Source: Octopus sinensis
Taxonomy: Eukaryota
Length of the DNA stretch: 64,000 bases
Reading direction: 5' to 3'
Assembly: GCF_006345805.1 (NCBI RefSeq)
Contig: NC_043005.1
Coordinates: 14,694,001 to 14,758,000, forward strand
Of this stretch, positions 7,621 to 61,116 are shown piece after piece. The notes under the pieces are model-generated. The model had not been told where the DNA came from and made no database searches. It saw nothing but the letters and a program-made list of their open reading frames with translations. The translations under genes were made by a program, and so were the position numbers. Every line of letters begins with the position of its first letter. Positions within the stretch are counted from its first letter, which is position 1.

Positions 7621-7661
7621 TTAGAATTCATCCTGCTCCCTCTCTTTATTATTAATAACAT
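7621..7661 (-). CDS. Left gene exon 6 coding part (DVINNKEREQDEF*)
   Basis: Follows an 85-nt intron; acttttgccag| acceptor, phase 1, TAA at 7621-7623. Confidence 0.8.
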
Positions 7662-10600
7662 CTGGCAAAAGTCACACAAGCAAAATTACAGAACTATTTC
7701 ATTGTTTCTTATAAGATTGTATGAGAAATACTTTTTATCAACTTACCATTTATTGATTTACATTCATGGTAAGGAACTTGAGATAATTGATCAAGAAGAT
7801 AAATACAGGAATATATTTCAGAAGTATCCATATTCTTCACTTTGATCTAAATTAAAGTAACAAAAAGAAAAGCAACAAAATTACATCTCCAGGAATTACA
7901 TGGCTTTAGACAGGTGTCACATTTGTTCTGGACCCAGTAATTAAACAGATGGGGAACACCTCACTTATCCATCCACTCAGCAATTTTATCTCTTCTTCAA
8001 CTGAAGTGTTCTTTCAAATATTGATAACTTCATACAAGACCATCTTTACAGGGGCTCAGCTGCTCACATTCTTTACACATGATTTAGGAAACTCAAAACA
8101 ACATAAAGGAATTCTATTGGATCCACAGATGATGGCATCAGGGACAGAACCTGGTCTTGTCATCTTAATAAATTCAACTTGAAAATATTATTCCATTCTA
8201 AATCATAAATTCATGTAGAACTGAATGTTGAATCACAGTTAGTGATGGAGTCTGGTAGATATAACCTGTCTACATTTGGGTCTCTTACCTATTCTATATC
8301 CCCCATTTGTGTCTACATAAGTTGCCTAGACTGCCTCTTGGTATATCATCTCACCTTTGTATCAGTTCTCTATCACTCATCTCTCTATTATCCACCCACA
8401 CTCCACCACCAGCCTGTCTAACTAACAATAACAGTGAATCTCTCCTTTTCTCTGTACCCTGCAGTCATTGTAGGAATGTTACTGGACCTGTCTACCCTCT
8501 TGTCTCTCTCATACTCTCCTCTCTCTCTCTCTCTCTCTCTCTCTCTCTCTCTCCCCTTACTCTCTTCCATTATGCCTCTACTATAAAGGGTGGCACTGGA
8601 ACTATCTGTACTCAATACTGCCTACAACCAGTCTTGTCCTCTCTTTCAATGCAGTCAACATCCTTTTTCTCTTTTCTTTTGCCACCCCTCAGTCCCATCT
8701 TTCTGTTTCTGCTATCATACACTTGGCCCCTTCCCCAAACACATCCTAGTTTGCTCCCACCATCACTCTACCTGCTACCCACCCTGTTTGTTGTCAAGAA
8801 TGTGACAGTCTCTCTAGTAGGGGACCATGCATGTGTGTGCCTGTGTAAATATTCACATTCTGCCCTGGGGTAAGCCAGAGACGACGATGATGACGTTTGT
8901 TGTCATTTCCCCATCAGAAAATTGTCCTGTAGCACTGCACATTCAAAGACAGGTGGAATAACATCTCCCTTCATAGAAAGCCAGGAAAGGGTTAGTGACA
9001 TAAAAAACACTGAGTTGAAAAGCATCTCCTTCATAATATGTATTCATCTAACCCATGCTAGAATAGAAAAAAGCAGTTGTAAAGCAAACAAATATATTCA
9101 TAGAATATTTGTTTATTTACAATGTTGTGTATATCAGAACTGAATTAAATCTAAATATTAAAGTATGATATTCTCTTTCATCCTTTTTTTTTTTTACTAT
9201 AATCTTGTTTCACCCAATGTGAGGTTTTAGAATATTTAAATATATAAGCAGGCATACGTACAGTAATAATCATTAATACAGTTGGTTATGTTAATAAATG
9301 TCTAAGGGGCTTATTTGGAAAAGCTGAGATTATTTATACAAATCTAAAAAACATGACAGGCAAGAAATATATTGAGGTTCAGTCAAGCAGGTATACTCAT
9401 TCTAAATGAAAAAGTAATAAAGGGTTTTACTTACATCTGTGCCCAGCTGAAATTTTCCTCTTGTCAATAACTTAATTTCTGACAGTGTATTCATTTCCGT
9501 AGGAAGGAGGAATGATTTATTTGCTGTTGTTGAATTTGGTTGAAATACTACCTTCTGTTTAACATAAGGGTCTAACCTTATATAAAACTCATATTTGCCA
9601 TATGCGTTATTACGTTGAACTTCAAAGGTCCAGTGTGTCCCTAGAAAGTAAGAGACAAAAAACGTCATCATCAGGCACAACAAAATTTCAAAATTATTAA
9701 ACATAAAATGATCATTGTCTTGTAAGGAGGTTGGATTTCAAATAAAATCATTAGAATATGATTGGAAAACATTTAGTTTTCCAATCATAGATTTATTACG
9801 TTTCTTTTCTTTTGTAATTTATTGAGATTATTTATTTCTATATCAAACAACAGAAGGAGAGGCTTTAAAAACTTTAAATAGTCACACATATGAGAAGGTA
9901 CCCAAAAGTAACTGGAAGCATTCTCTATGGGAAAAGCCCATTGTAGTCGAGGATTCTGAATTGACAAACTTTTTGATATGACTGGTGTGTCCTGGAGCTG
10001 CTGCCAACAAATTTTGAACAAGGAATTTCAAATGAAAAGAGTTGCAGCAAAATTTGTGCTTCACTTGTTCACAGAAGATCAGAAAGCAGTCTTGACTGAA
10101 TGTGTGACTCCTCTTACCCTGCCTCCCTATTCACCTGATCTTGCTCTTTGCAACTGTTTTTTTTTTTGTTCCTCTGAATAAAAAATGTCCTCAAAGGAAA
10201 ACATTTTGCAGATGTGGAAGAGAGGAAGTAAAAAACAAAACAAGCGTCAAAAGGCATCACTTTGCAAGAGTTCCAGGACTGCTTTGAACAGTGGTCTGAA
10301 TCGATGCATTGCTTCAAATGGAGAATACTTTGATGGCGATAGAAGTGTAAACATGTAAGACTAAGTGAATAAAATAATATAGCAAAATTCTGGTTTCTTT
10401 TGGGTGTTCTAGATCAGTGATTTTCAAGTCAGTTTAACTCTGAACCCTTTTCTGTCCCTAATGCTATTTTTAAATTACCCCAACCTTGTTATGATTCAAT
10501 GCATCTCTTCTTCTGATGTATATATATTAAAAATACGCAGCCATGTTCTGTGGCTAAGATGCTCAATTTGCAACCAGATCATTTAGTGTTTACTTCCAAT

Positions 10601-59900: not shown

Positions 59901-61116
59901 AATATTTACACTGGCATACACATGCATGGTCCCCTACTAGGGAGACTGTCACATTCTTGACAAAAAACAGGGTGGGTAGCAGGTAGAGTGATGGTGGGAG
60001 CAAACTAGGATGTGTTTGGGGAAGGGGCCAAGTGTATGATAGCAGAAACAGAAAGATGGGACTGAAGGGGTGGCAAAAGAAAAGAGAAAAAGGATGTTGA
60101 CTGCATTGAAAGAGAGGACAAGACTGGTTGTAGGCAGTATTGAGTACAGATGGTTCCAGTGCTACCCTTTATAGTAGAGGCATAATGGAAGAGAGTAAGG
60201 GGAGAGAGAGAGAGAGAGGAGAGTATAAGAGAGACAAGAGGGTAGACAGGTCTAGTAACATTCCTACAATGACTGCAGGGTACAGAGAAAAGGAGAGATT
60301 CACTGTTATTGTTAGTTAGACAGGCTGGTGGTGGAGTGTGGGTGGATAATAGAGAGATGAGTGATAGAGAACTGATACAAAGGTGAGATGATATACCAAG
60401 AGGCAGTCTAGGCAACTTATGTAGACACAAATGGGGGATATAGAATAGGTAAGAGACCCAAATGTAGACAGGTTATATCTACCAGACTCCATCACTAACT
60501 GTGATTCAACATTCAGTTCTACATGAATTTATGATTTAGAATGGAATAATATTTTCATGTTGAATTTATTAAGATGACAAGACCAGGTTCTGTCCCTGAT
60601 GCCATCATCTGTGGATCCAATAGAATTCCTTTATGTTGTTTTAAGTTTCTTAAATCATGTGTAAAGAATGTGAGCAGCTGAGCCCCTGTAAAGATGGTCT
60701 TGTATAAAGTTATCAATATTTGAAAGAACACTTCAGTTGAAGAAAAGATAAAATTGCTGAGTGGATGGATAAGTGAGGTGTTCCCCATCTGTTTAATTAC
60801 TTGGTCCAGAACAAATGTGACACCTGTCTAAAGCCATGTAATTCCTGGAGATGTAATTTTGTTGCTTTTCTTTTTCTTATTTTAATTTAGATCACGGTGA
60901 AGAATATGGATACTTCTGAAATATATTCCTGTATTTATCTTCAGTCTCCATCTACTGAACCTCCTTATCATGAATGTTTATTGGTAAATGGTAAGTTGAT
61001 AAAAAGTATTTCTCATACAATCTTATAAGAAACAATGAAATAGTTCTGTAATTTTGCCTGTGTGGCTTTTGCCAGGTGTTCTTGATAATAAAGAGAGGGA
61101 GCAGGATGAATTCTAA
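44873..61116 (+). CDS. Six-exon gene, right paralog; as assembled it has a 1-nt deletion in exon 2 (pseudogene allele or homopolymer error)
   Basis: Same splice sites and phases as the left copy, but exon 2 is 196 nt instead of 197. Frame-restored translation: MLVLTYCSILFFVLPHFFYTQARKWDVEICYTEAHKFSVHLTLNSKIFKTIACPSKQNCYETEIDLANETKPNFIKVNPSKEFQIVIKNKDLEEAYGVRCEAPCPGGKMTLSNWTHWSFVVKRDHAYGEYEFNLELEPYVKMDVVFRPNSKTSNKSFLLPSEMNTQSEIKLLTRGKFQLGTDITVKNMDTSEIYSCIYLQSPSTEPPYHECLLVNGVLDNKEREQDEF*. Confidence 0.8.
46380..47400 (+). mobile_element. RTE LINE 3' portion (right arm only)
   Basis: VVDSFRYLGD, RIRISWAKFRELLPLL, GRGRPRKTW. Confidence 0.85.
47593..47990 (+). mobile_element. Short Helitron, right-arm specific, with the empty site visible in the left arm (~21073)
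   Basis: tgaaa|TC...CTAG|ttggtaat versus tgaaa|ttggtaat in the left arm: AT target, no TSD. Confidence 0.95.
48108..48303 (+). CDS. Right gene exon 2 (196 nt; AAA instead of AAAA near the 5' end)
   Basis: Splice sites identical to the left exon 2. The downstream frame is open and keeps all three Cys. Confidence 0.85.
48920..49600 (-). mobile_element. R4/Dong-like LINE RT fragment
   Basis: PNWMLEGQTTLIPQ..QNYRLITFL..HLENNNVLPEEQKEC. Confidence 0.7.
54397..54484 (+). CDS. Right gene exon 3 (IVIKNKDLEEAYGVRCEAPCPGGKMTLSN)
   Basis: ttgtag| acceptor, t|gtaaga donor, 88 nt. Confidence 0.8.
59116..59321 (+). CDS. Right gene exon 4
   Basis: tttctag| acceptor, gat|gtaagt donor, 206 nt. Confidence 0.9.
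60891..60990 (+). CDS. Right gene exon 5 (ITVKNMDTSEIYSCIYLQSPSTEPPYHECLLVN)
   Basis: atttag| acceptor, g|gtaagt donor, 100 nt. Confidence 0.88.
61076..61116 (+). CDS. Right gene exon 6 coding part (GVLDNKEREQDEF*)
   Basis: Follows an 85-nt intron; gcttttgccag| acceptor, TAA at 61114-61116. Confidence 0.8.

Follow-up and report, generated by a model that had tools for sequence, protein, structure and literature searches.

Paralogous genes whose coding exons have diverged more than their introns have been described in several settings. In snake venom PLA2 and conotoxin genes, the exons of paralogs are more diverged than the introns and nonsynonymous relative to synonymous substitution (Ka/Ks) is about 1 or higher, and in RHD/RHCE and in the conversion-with-selection models of Innan and of Teshima and Innan, selection reportedly keeps a divergence peak within a region that is homogenized by gene conversion. 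For the gibbon L/M opsin genes, Hiwatashi et al. (2011; PMC3213168) describe exons that have diverged further between paralogs than the introns have, also at synonymous sites, exon trees that group by paralog, intron trees that group by species, and conversion tracts that are mainly intronic, which the authors read as purifying selection against homogenization. In Katsura and Satta (2011; PMC3112145), MAGE-A3/A6, a symmetric pair in near-identical arms of a human X palindrome, is described as having a local peak of coding divergence with a nonsynonymous to synonymous ratio of ~0.9, ascribed to selection against homogenization. Here we describe a locus from Octopus sinensis, contained in a window of 64,000 nt (contig NC_043005.1, positions 14,694,001 to 14,758,000; coordinates given below without an accession are window positions), in which two head-to-head genes, LOC118764737 (left arm, minus strand) and LOC118764774 (right arm, plus strand), occupy the opposite arms of a large palindrome and differ far more in their coding exons than in the surrounding non-coding DNA. 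The explanation that we favor, with a probability of about 0.72, is that a whole gene was long ago duplicated in inverted orientation, after which the non-coding DNA would have been homogenized by arm-to-arm conversion and the exons protected from it.

The palindrome was delimited by an inverted-repeat scan and by a BLAST comparison of the window with its reverse complement. Its arms span ~6260-34948 (left, holding the left gene on the minus strand) and ~39655-62547 (right, holding the right gene on the plus strand), with a spacer of ~4.7 kb between them (34949-39654, center near 37300), and the aligned arm-to-arm blocks are 94-99% identical, broken up by arm-specific insertions. The independent O. 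vulgaris assembly is colinear with this locus and contiguous across the palindrome center, and thus the palindrome is not an artifact of assembly; in O. vulgaris the arms remain colinear for ~25 kb past the window ends, showing that the inverted duplication spans the whole gene. Gene models were rebuilt from splice signals and reading frames, and every acceptor in them is YAG and all five donors are GTAAG or GTAAA. A preliminary description, made from the DNA letters alone, had proposed a head-to-head paralog pair in a giant palindrome, with ATGs at 28637 (minus) and 44873 (plus) and GT-AG sites; the pair proves to be real, and the rebuilt models reproduce the exon coordinates, start codons and splice sites of that description exactly.

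Divergence between the two copies is concentrated in the exons. Exon 1 (left 28583-28637, right 44873-44927), which carries the start codon and the signal peptide, differs at 1 of 55 positions, and exon 3 (14282-14369 and 54397-54484, 88 nt) at 5 of 88, whereas exons 2, 4 and 5 form divergence islands: exon 2 (20760-20956, 197 nt, and 48108-48303, 196 nt) differs at 33 of 196 bases, exon 4 (9435-9640 and 59116-59321, 206 nt) at 27, all in its first 157 nt, and exon 5 (7747-7846 and 60891-60990, 100 nt) at 19, chiefly in its 3' half. Together with a putative exon 6 (7621-7661 and 61076-61116, 41 nt), 88 of 686 exon nucleotides (12.8%) and 59 of 228 residues differ between the arms, exactly the numbers counted by hand in the preliminary description, compared with 216 of the 10494 aligned non-exon columns in the gene span (2.06%; Fisher p=8e-37). 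When six segments matching the exons in length were placed at random, 3 of 100000 placements captured as many differences as the exons do. An identity plot of the arms, which had been proposed as a check, has its divergence peaks on exons 2, 4 and 5, and the 200-nt flanks of exon 4 contain 3 differences upstream and 1 downstream, as had been counted before. The exon excess had been put at roughly tenfold; it is highly significant, but amounts to ~6-fold overall and 8-fold in the exon 3-6 region, and it is unevenly spread among the exons. The pattern continues outside the window, where four more exons, compared between the O. vulgaris arms, differ by 17%, 20%, 11% and 23%; the flanks of the second to fourth of these differ by 3.4%, 2.3% and 1.6%, and the first (17%) has a downstream flank at ~1.7% (7 differences in ~415 nt) and an upstream flank that aligns poorly.

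Synonymous sites take part in this divergence. By the Nei-Gojobori method, 15.5 synonymous and 72.5 nonsynonymous differences were obtained, corresponding to a synonymous divergence (dS) of 0.121 and a nonsynonymous divergence (dN) of 0.147, and their ratio (omega) is 1.21 overall, not significantly above 1. In exon 2 omega is 2.7 (3 synonymous versus 30 nonsynonymous changes), which is not significant either. The 15.5 synonymous differences over 138.5 sites compare with 2.9 expected at the non-exon rate (Poisson P=3.6e-7), i.e., the synonymous divergence of the exons is ~6 times the non-exon rate. Because synonymous divergence is equally high, selection on amino acids after a recent duplication cannot explain the islands.

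A four-way alignment of both arms in O. sinensis and O. vulgaris over the exon 3-6 region dates these differences. In the exons (435 nt) the arms differ by 12.4% in both species and orthologs by 0.69%, and the informative sites comprise 51 arm-type, 0 species-type and 0 cross-type patterns. In the introns (8179 nt) the arms differ by 1.5% in O. sinensis and 2.2% in O. vulgaris and orthologs by 1.4-1.5%, and 60 arm-type, 25 species-type (arms agreeing within a species and differing between species) and 10 cross-type sites were found, a distribution that differs from that of the exons (Fisher p=2e-8). Since the exon differences between arms are common to both species, they are older than the species split, and since exon divergence between orthologs (0.69%) is below that of introns (1.4-1.5%), the exons have changed more slowly than the introns after the split. 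The introns have evolved in concert, and their similarity between arms at the level of orthologs is the signature of such concerted evolution. One intronic tract of 500 nt (52286-52785) contains 10 species-type sites, which mark arm-to-arm conversion after the species split; conversion between palindrome arms, raised in the preliminary description, is indeed the process that matters here.

Non-coding DNA that lies toward the outside of the palindrome offers a yardstick. The outer block at 61386-62547 (partner ~6260-7342) differs by 14.5-15.3% between the arms and by less than 1% (0.8-1.0%) between orthologs, and arm blocks near the spacer are ~10% diverged. The 15% divergence of the outer block represents the baseline reached without homogenization, and it equals the divergence of the exons. 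Some stretches of the exons beside the introns are identical between the arms even at synonymous sites, in exon 4 the final (3') 49 nt and in exon 5 most of the 5' half.

The same chromosome contains, 0.9 Mb away (CM016867.1:15571252-15634676), a second copy, of the left arm together with the palindrome center, which matches window positions 1-38704 and is annotated as LOC118764738, encoding 469 aa that include a transmembrane segment. Its identity, counted over substitutions, is 99.7%, with 0/687 differences in exons and 51/19354 outside them, and it represents either a haplotype that escaped collapsing or a segmental duplication of very recent origin. If exons mutated at a sixfold targeted rate, ~11 exon differences would be expected in this copy, and since none is observed, no exon-targeted mutation operates now. 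The exons had been called hypervariable and actively diversifying in the preliminary description; this is not supported, considering that dS is about equal to dN, that the 51 arm differences predate the species split, that the second copy has no exon differences and that non-coding blocks which escaped homogenization are diverged to a similar degree.

Per-exon identity tables were used for comparison with O. bimaculoides. In the 3' exons the right copy is nearer to an O. bimaculoides paralog than to the left copy, and in exons 2-4 the left and right copies are each other's closest relatives, which suggests an old duplication with some earlier homogenization that reached the 5' exons. At one O. 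bimaculoides locus of the family, which contains 5.2 kb of N, no head-to-head partner was found within 10 kb.

Under the explanation that we prefer, a membrane-protein gene of ~40-45 kb would have been duplicated long ago in inverted orientation, giving a head-to-head pair in a palindrome. Arm-to-arm gene conversion would then have repeatedly homogenized introns and intergenic sequence, until about the split of O. sinensis and O. vulgaris and later in some tracts, and the coding exons would have stayed outside conversion and retained their original ~12-15% divergence. Conversion tracts that replace diverged exon sequence would not persist, and those that enter an exon and halt at its diverged core may have left the identical stretches of exons 4 and 5 beside the introns. 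The guard is most likely to be selection against converted or chimeric proteins, with both paralog types being needed. Recombination is reluctant to proceed through strongly mismatched DNA, and the mismatched exons (13-20%), as a poor substrate for conversion, probably reinforce the protection. An omega near 1 together with frames open in four copies suggests that the proteins may contain a mix of constrained residues and residues that change freely or adaptively. The unusual feature of the locus is the similarity of its introns, not the divergence of its exons, and the locus offers no evidence that a new mechanism of mutation is at work or that the exons are hypervariable.

Several points weigh against this explanation. 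Selection as the guard of the exons is a step that we infer, and to guard about eight exons with sharp borders would take either strong selection on each of them or a mismatch barrier that is effective. In the regions of exons 1 and 2, all non-coding sites are arm-type, 13 to 0 in each, so that conversion there ended ahead of the species split. Given the uncertain orthology to three O. bimaculoides paralogs, the duplication can be dated only approximately. In addition, a frameshift in the right copy of O. sinensis (discussed below) fits poorly with a need for both copies, unless it arose recently or reflects an error of assembly.

The same observations can be set against other histories of the locus. 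A recent duplication of the arms (1-3% ago) followed by fast exon divergence under positive diversifying selection, of the kind seen in recognition or effector genes, would agree with an omega of 1.21 overall and 2.7 in exon 2, with codon positions 1, 2 and 3 having changed 34, 33 and 21 times between the arms, and with a family that is fast-evolving and lineage-restricted. We nevertheless regard it as unlikely, as dS (0.12) is ~6 times the non-exon rate, omega does not significantly exceed 1, no acceleration followed the species split (exons 0.69% versus introns 1.45%), the exons of the second copy are unchanged, and non-coding blocks are likewise 15% diverged. If a recent arm duplication had instead been followed by ectopic conversion that overwrote the exons of one copy from other family members, potential donors would be plentiful, since many paralogs exist on the same chromosome and on another, and a restriction to exons would follow from distant paralogs being alignable in their exons only. 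None of them is close, however, with at most ~60-66% protein identity to the pair, and the derived residue states are found in both copies (21 left-derived and 15 right-derived among the polarizable residues), which makes such overwriting very improbable.

Two further accounts concern the process by which the exons came to differ, and whether the arms exist as assembled. A past burst of exon-only mutagenesis, or conversion templated by spliced RNA or complementary DNA (cDNA) and bordered by splice sites, would be in line with islands that lie strictly within exons and with synonymous and nonsynonymous sites being hit alike. Against this, the process is not active now (as judged from the second copy and the species comparison), the intron-adjacent parts of exons 4 and 5 are identical between the arms, as is predicted by tracts entering the exons, unconverted non-coding blocks are equally diverged, so that a special mutator is unnecessary, and the introns are still present; we consider this account even harder to accept than overwriting from paralogs. 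The O. sinensis assembly does contain the second copy 0.9 Mb away, 99.7% identical to the left arm and center, and the exon 2 indel is in a homopolymer; both could point to a false inverted join or to collapsed or duplicated haplotypes. Considering that the same palindrome, with a contiguous center and with both left-type and right-type exons, recurs in the independent assembly of O. vulgaris, an assembly artifact is the least credible of these alternatives.

The gene models extend further than had been thought. Both genes had been described as having six exons in matching phases. For exons 1-5 the structure holds, the left full-length protein being 100% identical to O. sinensis XP_036361597 (LOC118764737) and the exon 1-5 junctions being identical in the rebuilt and the NCBI models, whereas exon 6 and its stop codon occur in no annotated model, neither for the left (7621-7661) nor for the right copy (61076-61116). 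The NCBI left model joins exon 5 to an exon that begins with DSMWRVELTS and lies outside the window, and the O. vulgaris counterpart of that exon is ~200 nt past the position matching the left end of the window. As exon 5 is spliced in both the NCBI and the O. vulgaris models to an exon just outside the window, with exon 6 unused, the genes are ~40-45 kb long with ~10 or more coding exons, not six, and NCBI models both as single-pass membrane proteins of roughly 470 aa. The frame of the putative exon 6 is open to QDEF* in both arms of both species, and its 3 arm-type differences each change an amino acid; at most it would be an alternative terminal exon, from which a short secreted form could arise, or it may simply be where the divergence island of exon 5 tails off. 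Another inverted block, at 63332-64000 (partner 423-1091, 98.7% identical), sits directly inward of the next coding exon, and that exon is beyond the window. An open reading frame (ORF) at 45005-45099 was considered as a candidate for exon 2 and dropped, as its phases do not fit.

The phases of the two genes do not match throughout. In the right exon 2 one A is lost from the run at 48121-48123, which reads AAA compared with AAAA in the left partner (~20940-20943), so that this exon has 196 nt versus 197 nt in the left copy, and with the shared splice sites the loss causes a frameshift and a premature stop; the use of an alternative acceptor 8 nt farther downstream, at 48116, would bring the exon back into frame. 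The right copy of O. vulgaris has exons 1-5 undamaged and bounded by the same splice sites, and its exon 2 has 197 nt. The NCBI proteins of LOC118764774 start at a Met inside exon 4 (isoform X1) or exon 5 (isoform X2) and continue into exons past the right end of the window, as would fit an upstream frame that is interrupted in the O. sinensis assembly. The frameshift could be a homopolymer assembly error or a recent pseudogenization. In O. vulgaris, the annotated protein CAI9728740 begins the right gene at an ORF in the spacer (35910-36056, plus strand) and adds an intronic ORF (54559-54663), and this annotation looks chimeric and mistaken; an ORF on the opposite strand, at 35908-36492, is related to this spacer ORF.

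Other elements of the window are repeats and insertions. CAT/CAC microsatellite-like sequence in the spacer (38081-38797), which also contains local repeats and CAT/His-type microsatellite, gives rise on both strands to spurious ORFs that are long and rich in His or Val, and CAT-rich runs at 54150-54370 and 61270-61290, which resemble the spacer microsatellite, account for most inter-arm gaps. The left arm alone has a local inverted repeat (22429-23798 and 25434-26801, 98% identical), each copy of which contains an ORF with a Pif1 helicase 2B domain, suggesting a possible Helitron-like element; this repeat explains part of the difference in intron 1 length between the gene copies. Also confined to the left arm is a fragment of a reverse transcriptase of the long interspersed nuclear element type (Pfam RVT_1, E=6e-16) at 29450-30513, 5' of the start codon of the left gene. 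Rfam and tRNA scans of the window gave no matches.

Relatives of the two proteins were sought by exhaustive HMMER search with a profile of exon 4 and by profile search with the family alignment. The search for further paralogs that had been recommended in the preliminary description did yield additional family members, all in O. sinensis, O. vulgaris and O. bimaculoides and all annotated as uncharacterized, with many paralogs on the palindrome chromosome and on another; all other members have at most ~60-66% protein identity to the pair. Two bacterial repeat proteins among the exon 4 matches (P0005 and P0007 in our protein set) were dismissed as spurious, the exon 4-6 peptide of the right copy had no match in a word-indexed protein search, and the literature searched contained no mention of any of the six LOC identifiers queried. 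Pfam found no domain in the exon translations or in six full-length family members. Full-length members have 450-580 aa and are made up of a signal peptide, an all-beta ectodomain that contains cysteines, a transmembrane segment of hydrophobic character and a cytoplasmic tail, with residues 22-215 being all-beta in AlphaFold models (predicted local distance difference test, pLDDT, 70-90). Foldseek searches of the PDB with two family AlphaFold models (P0001 and P0002) gave no match with E <= 0.001; the best matches (E of 0.005 or worse, template modeling score, TM-score, <= 0.34) are weak and of a generic beta-sandwich kind, including KIR/LILR tandem immunoglobulin domains, PLAT domains and carbohydrate-binding modules.

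In two members (P0006 and P0014, which are O. sinensis LOC115217897 and its O. vulgaris counterpart), the exon 3-4 module is duplicated internally, so the number of modules varies within the family. The cytoplasmic tails of three members (P0008, P0019 and P0011) bear tyrosine motifs, such as YSDL...YEEL in P0008, which are loosely like immune-receptor signaling motifs, with non-canonical spacing. The products of the pair are members of a family of receptor-like single-pass membrane proteins that is fast-evolving and restricted to Octopus, and because of these properties a role of the pair in recognition is possible. A more specific proposal, which we offer tentatively and think rather doubtful, is that they are undescribed Octopus-restricted single-pass receptors with an all-beta ectodomain and tyrosine tails, in which two specificities are both kept and selection separates the copies in every exon; if true, it would imply paired or partner-specific recognition in innate immunity, in self/non-self discrimination or in chemotactile sensing.

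The pair follows a type of evolution that has already been described, conversion opposed by selection, and differs in its scale and in the gene family involved. As in the L/M opsins described by Hiwatashi et al., the octopus exons group by paralog, the introns do not, and synonymous sites in exons are diverged; unlike the octopus genes, the opsins in that account form a tandem array in which only the central exons are protected, and their spectral-tuning sites are known. The MAGE-A3/A6 peak, as given by Katsura and Satta, is ~2% in one 673-bp region of a single-exon coding sequence, compared with 11-23% in many exons and in two species here. In RHD/RHCE there is one exon-centered peak, whereas the octopus pattern runs exon by exon. 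PLA2 and conotoxin genes encode small secreted products in tandem arrays and their acceleration continues between species, whereas the octopus product is a membrane protein of 450-580 aa with a cytoplasmic tail and its exons evolve more slowly than introns between species; a short secreted octopus form would depend on the unsupported exon 6. Primate Y palindromes resemble the octopus palindrome in having large inverted arms around a spacer that are kept similar by conversion, but their genes are homogenized together with the arms (>99.9%), whereas in the octopus the coding exons are the exception. Set beside these precedents, the octopus locus has islands at almost all exons of a gene of 40-45 kb, with a 6- to 10-fold contrast, in two species.

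The locus may therefore serve as an unusually clean multi-exon case of selection opposing gene conversion within a palindrome, and, being in a mollusc, it may be useful for estimating the lengths of conversion tracts and the strength of selection against homogenization. It also points to an uncharacterized, Octopus-only family of receptor-like proteins that is possibly worth studies of expression and binding.

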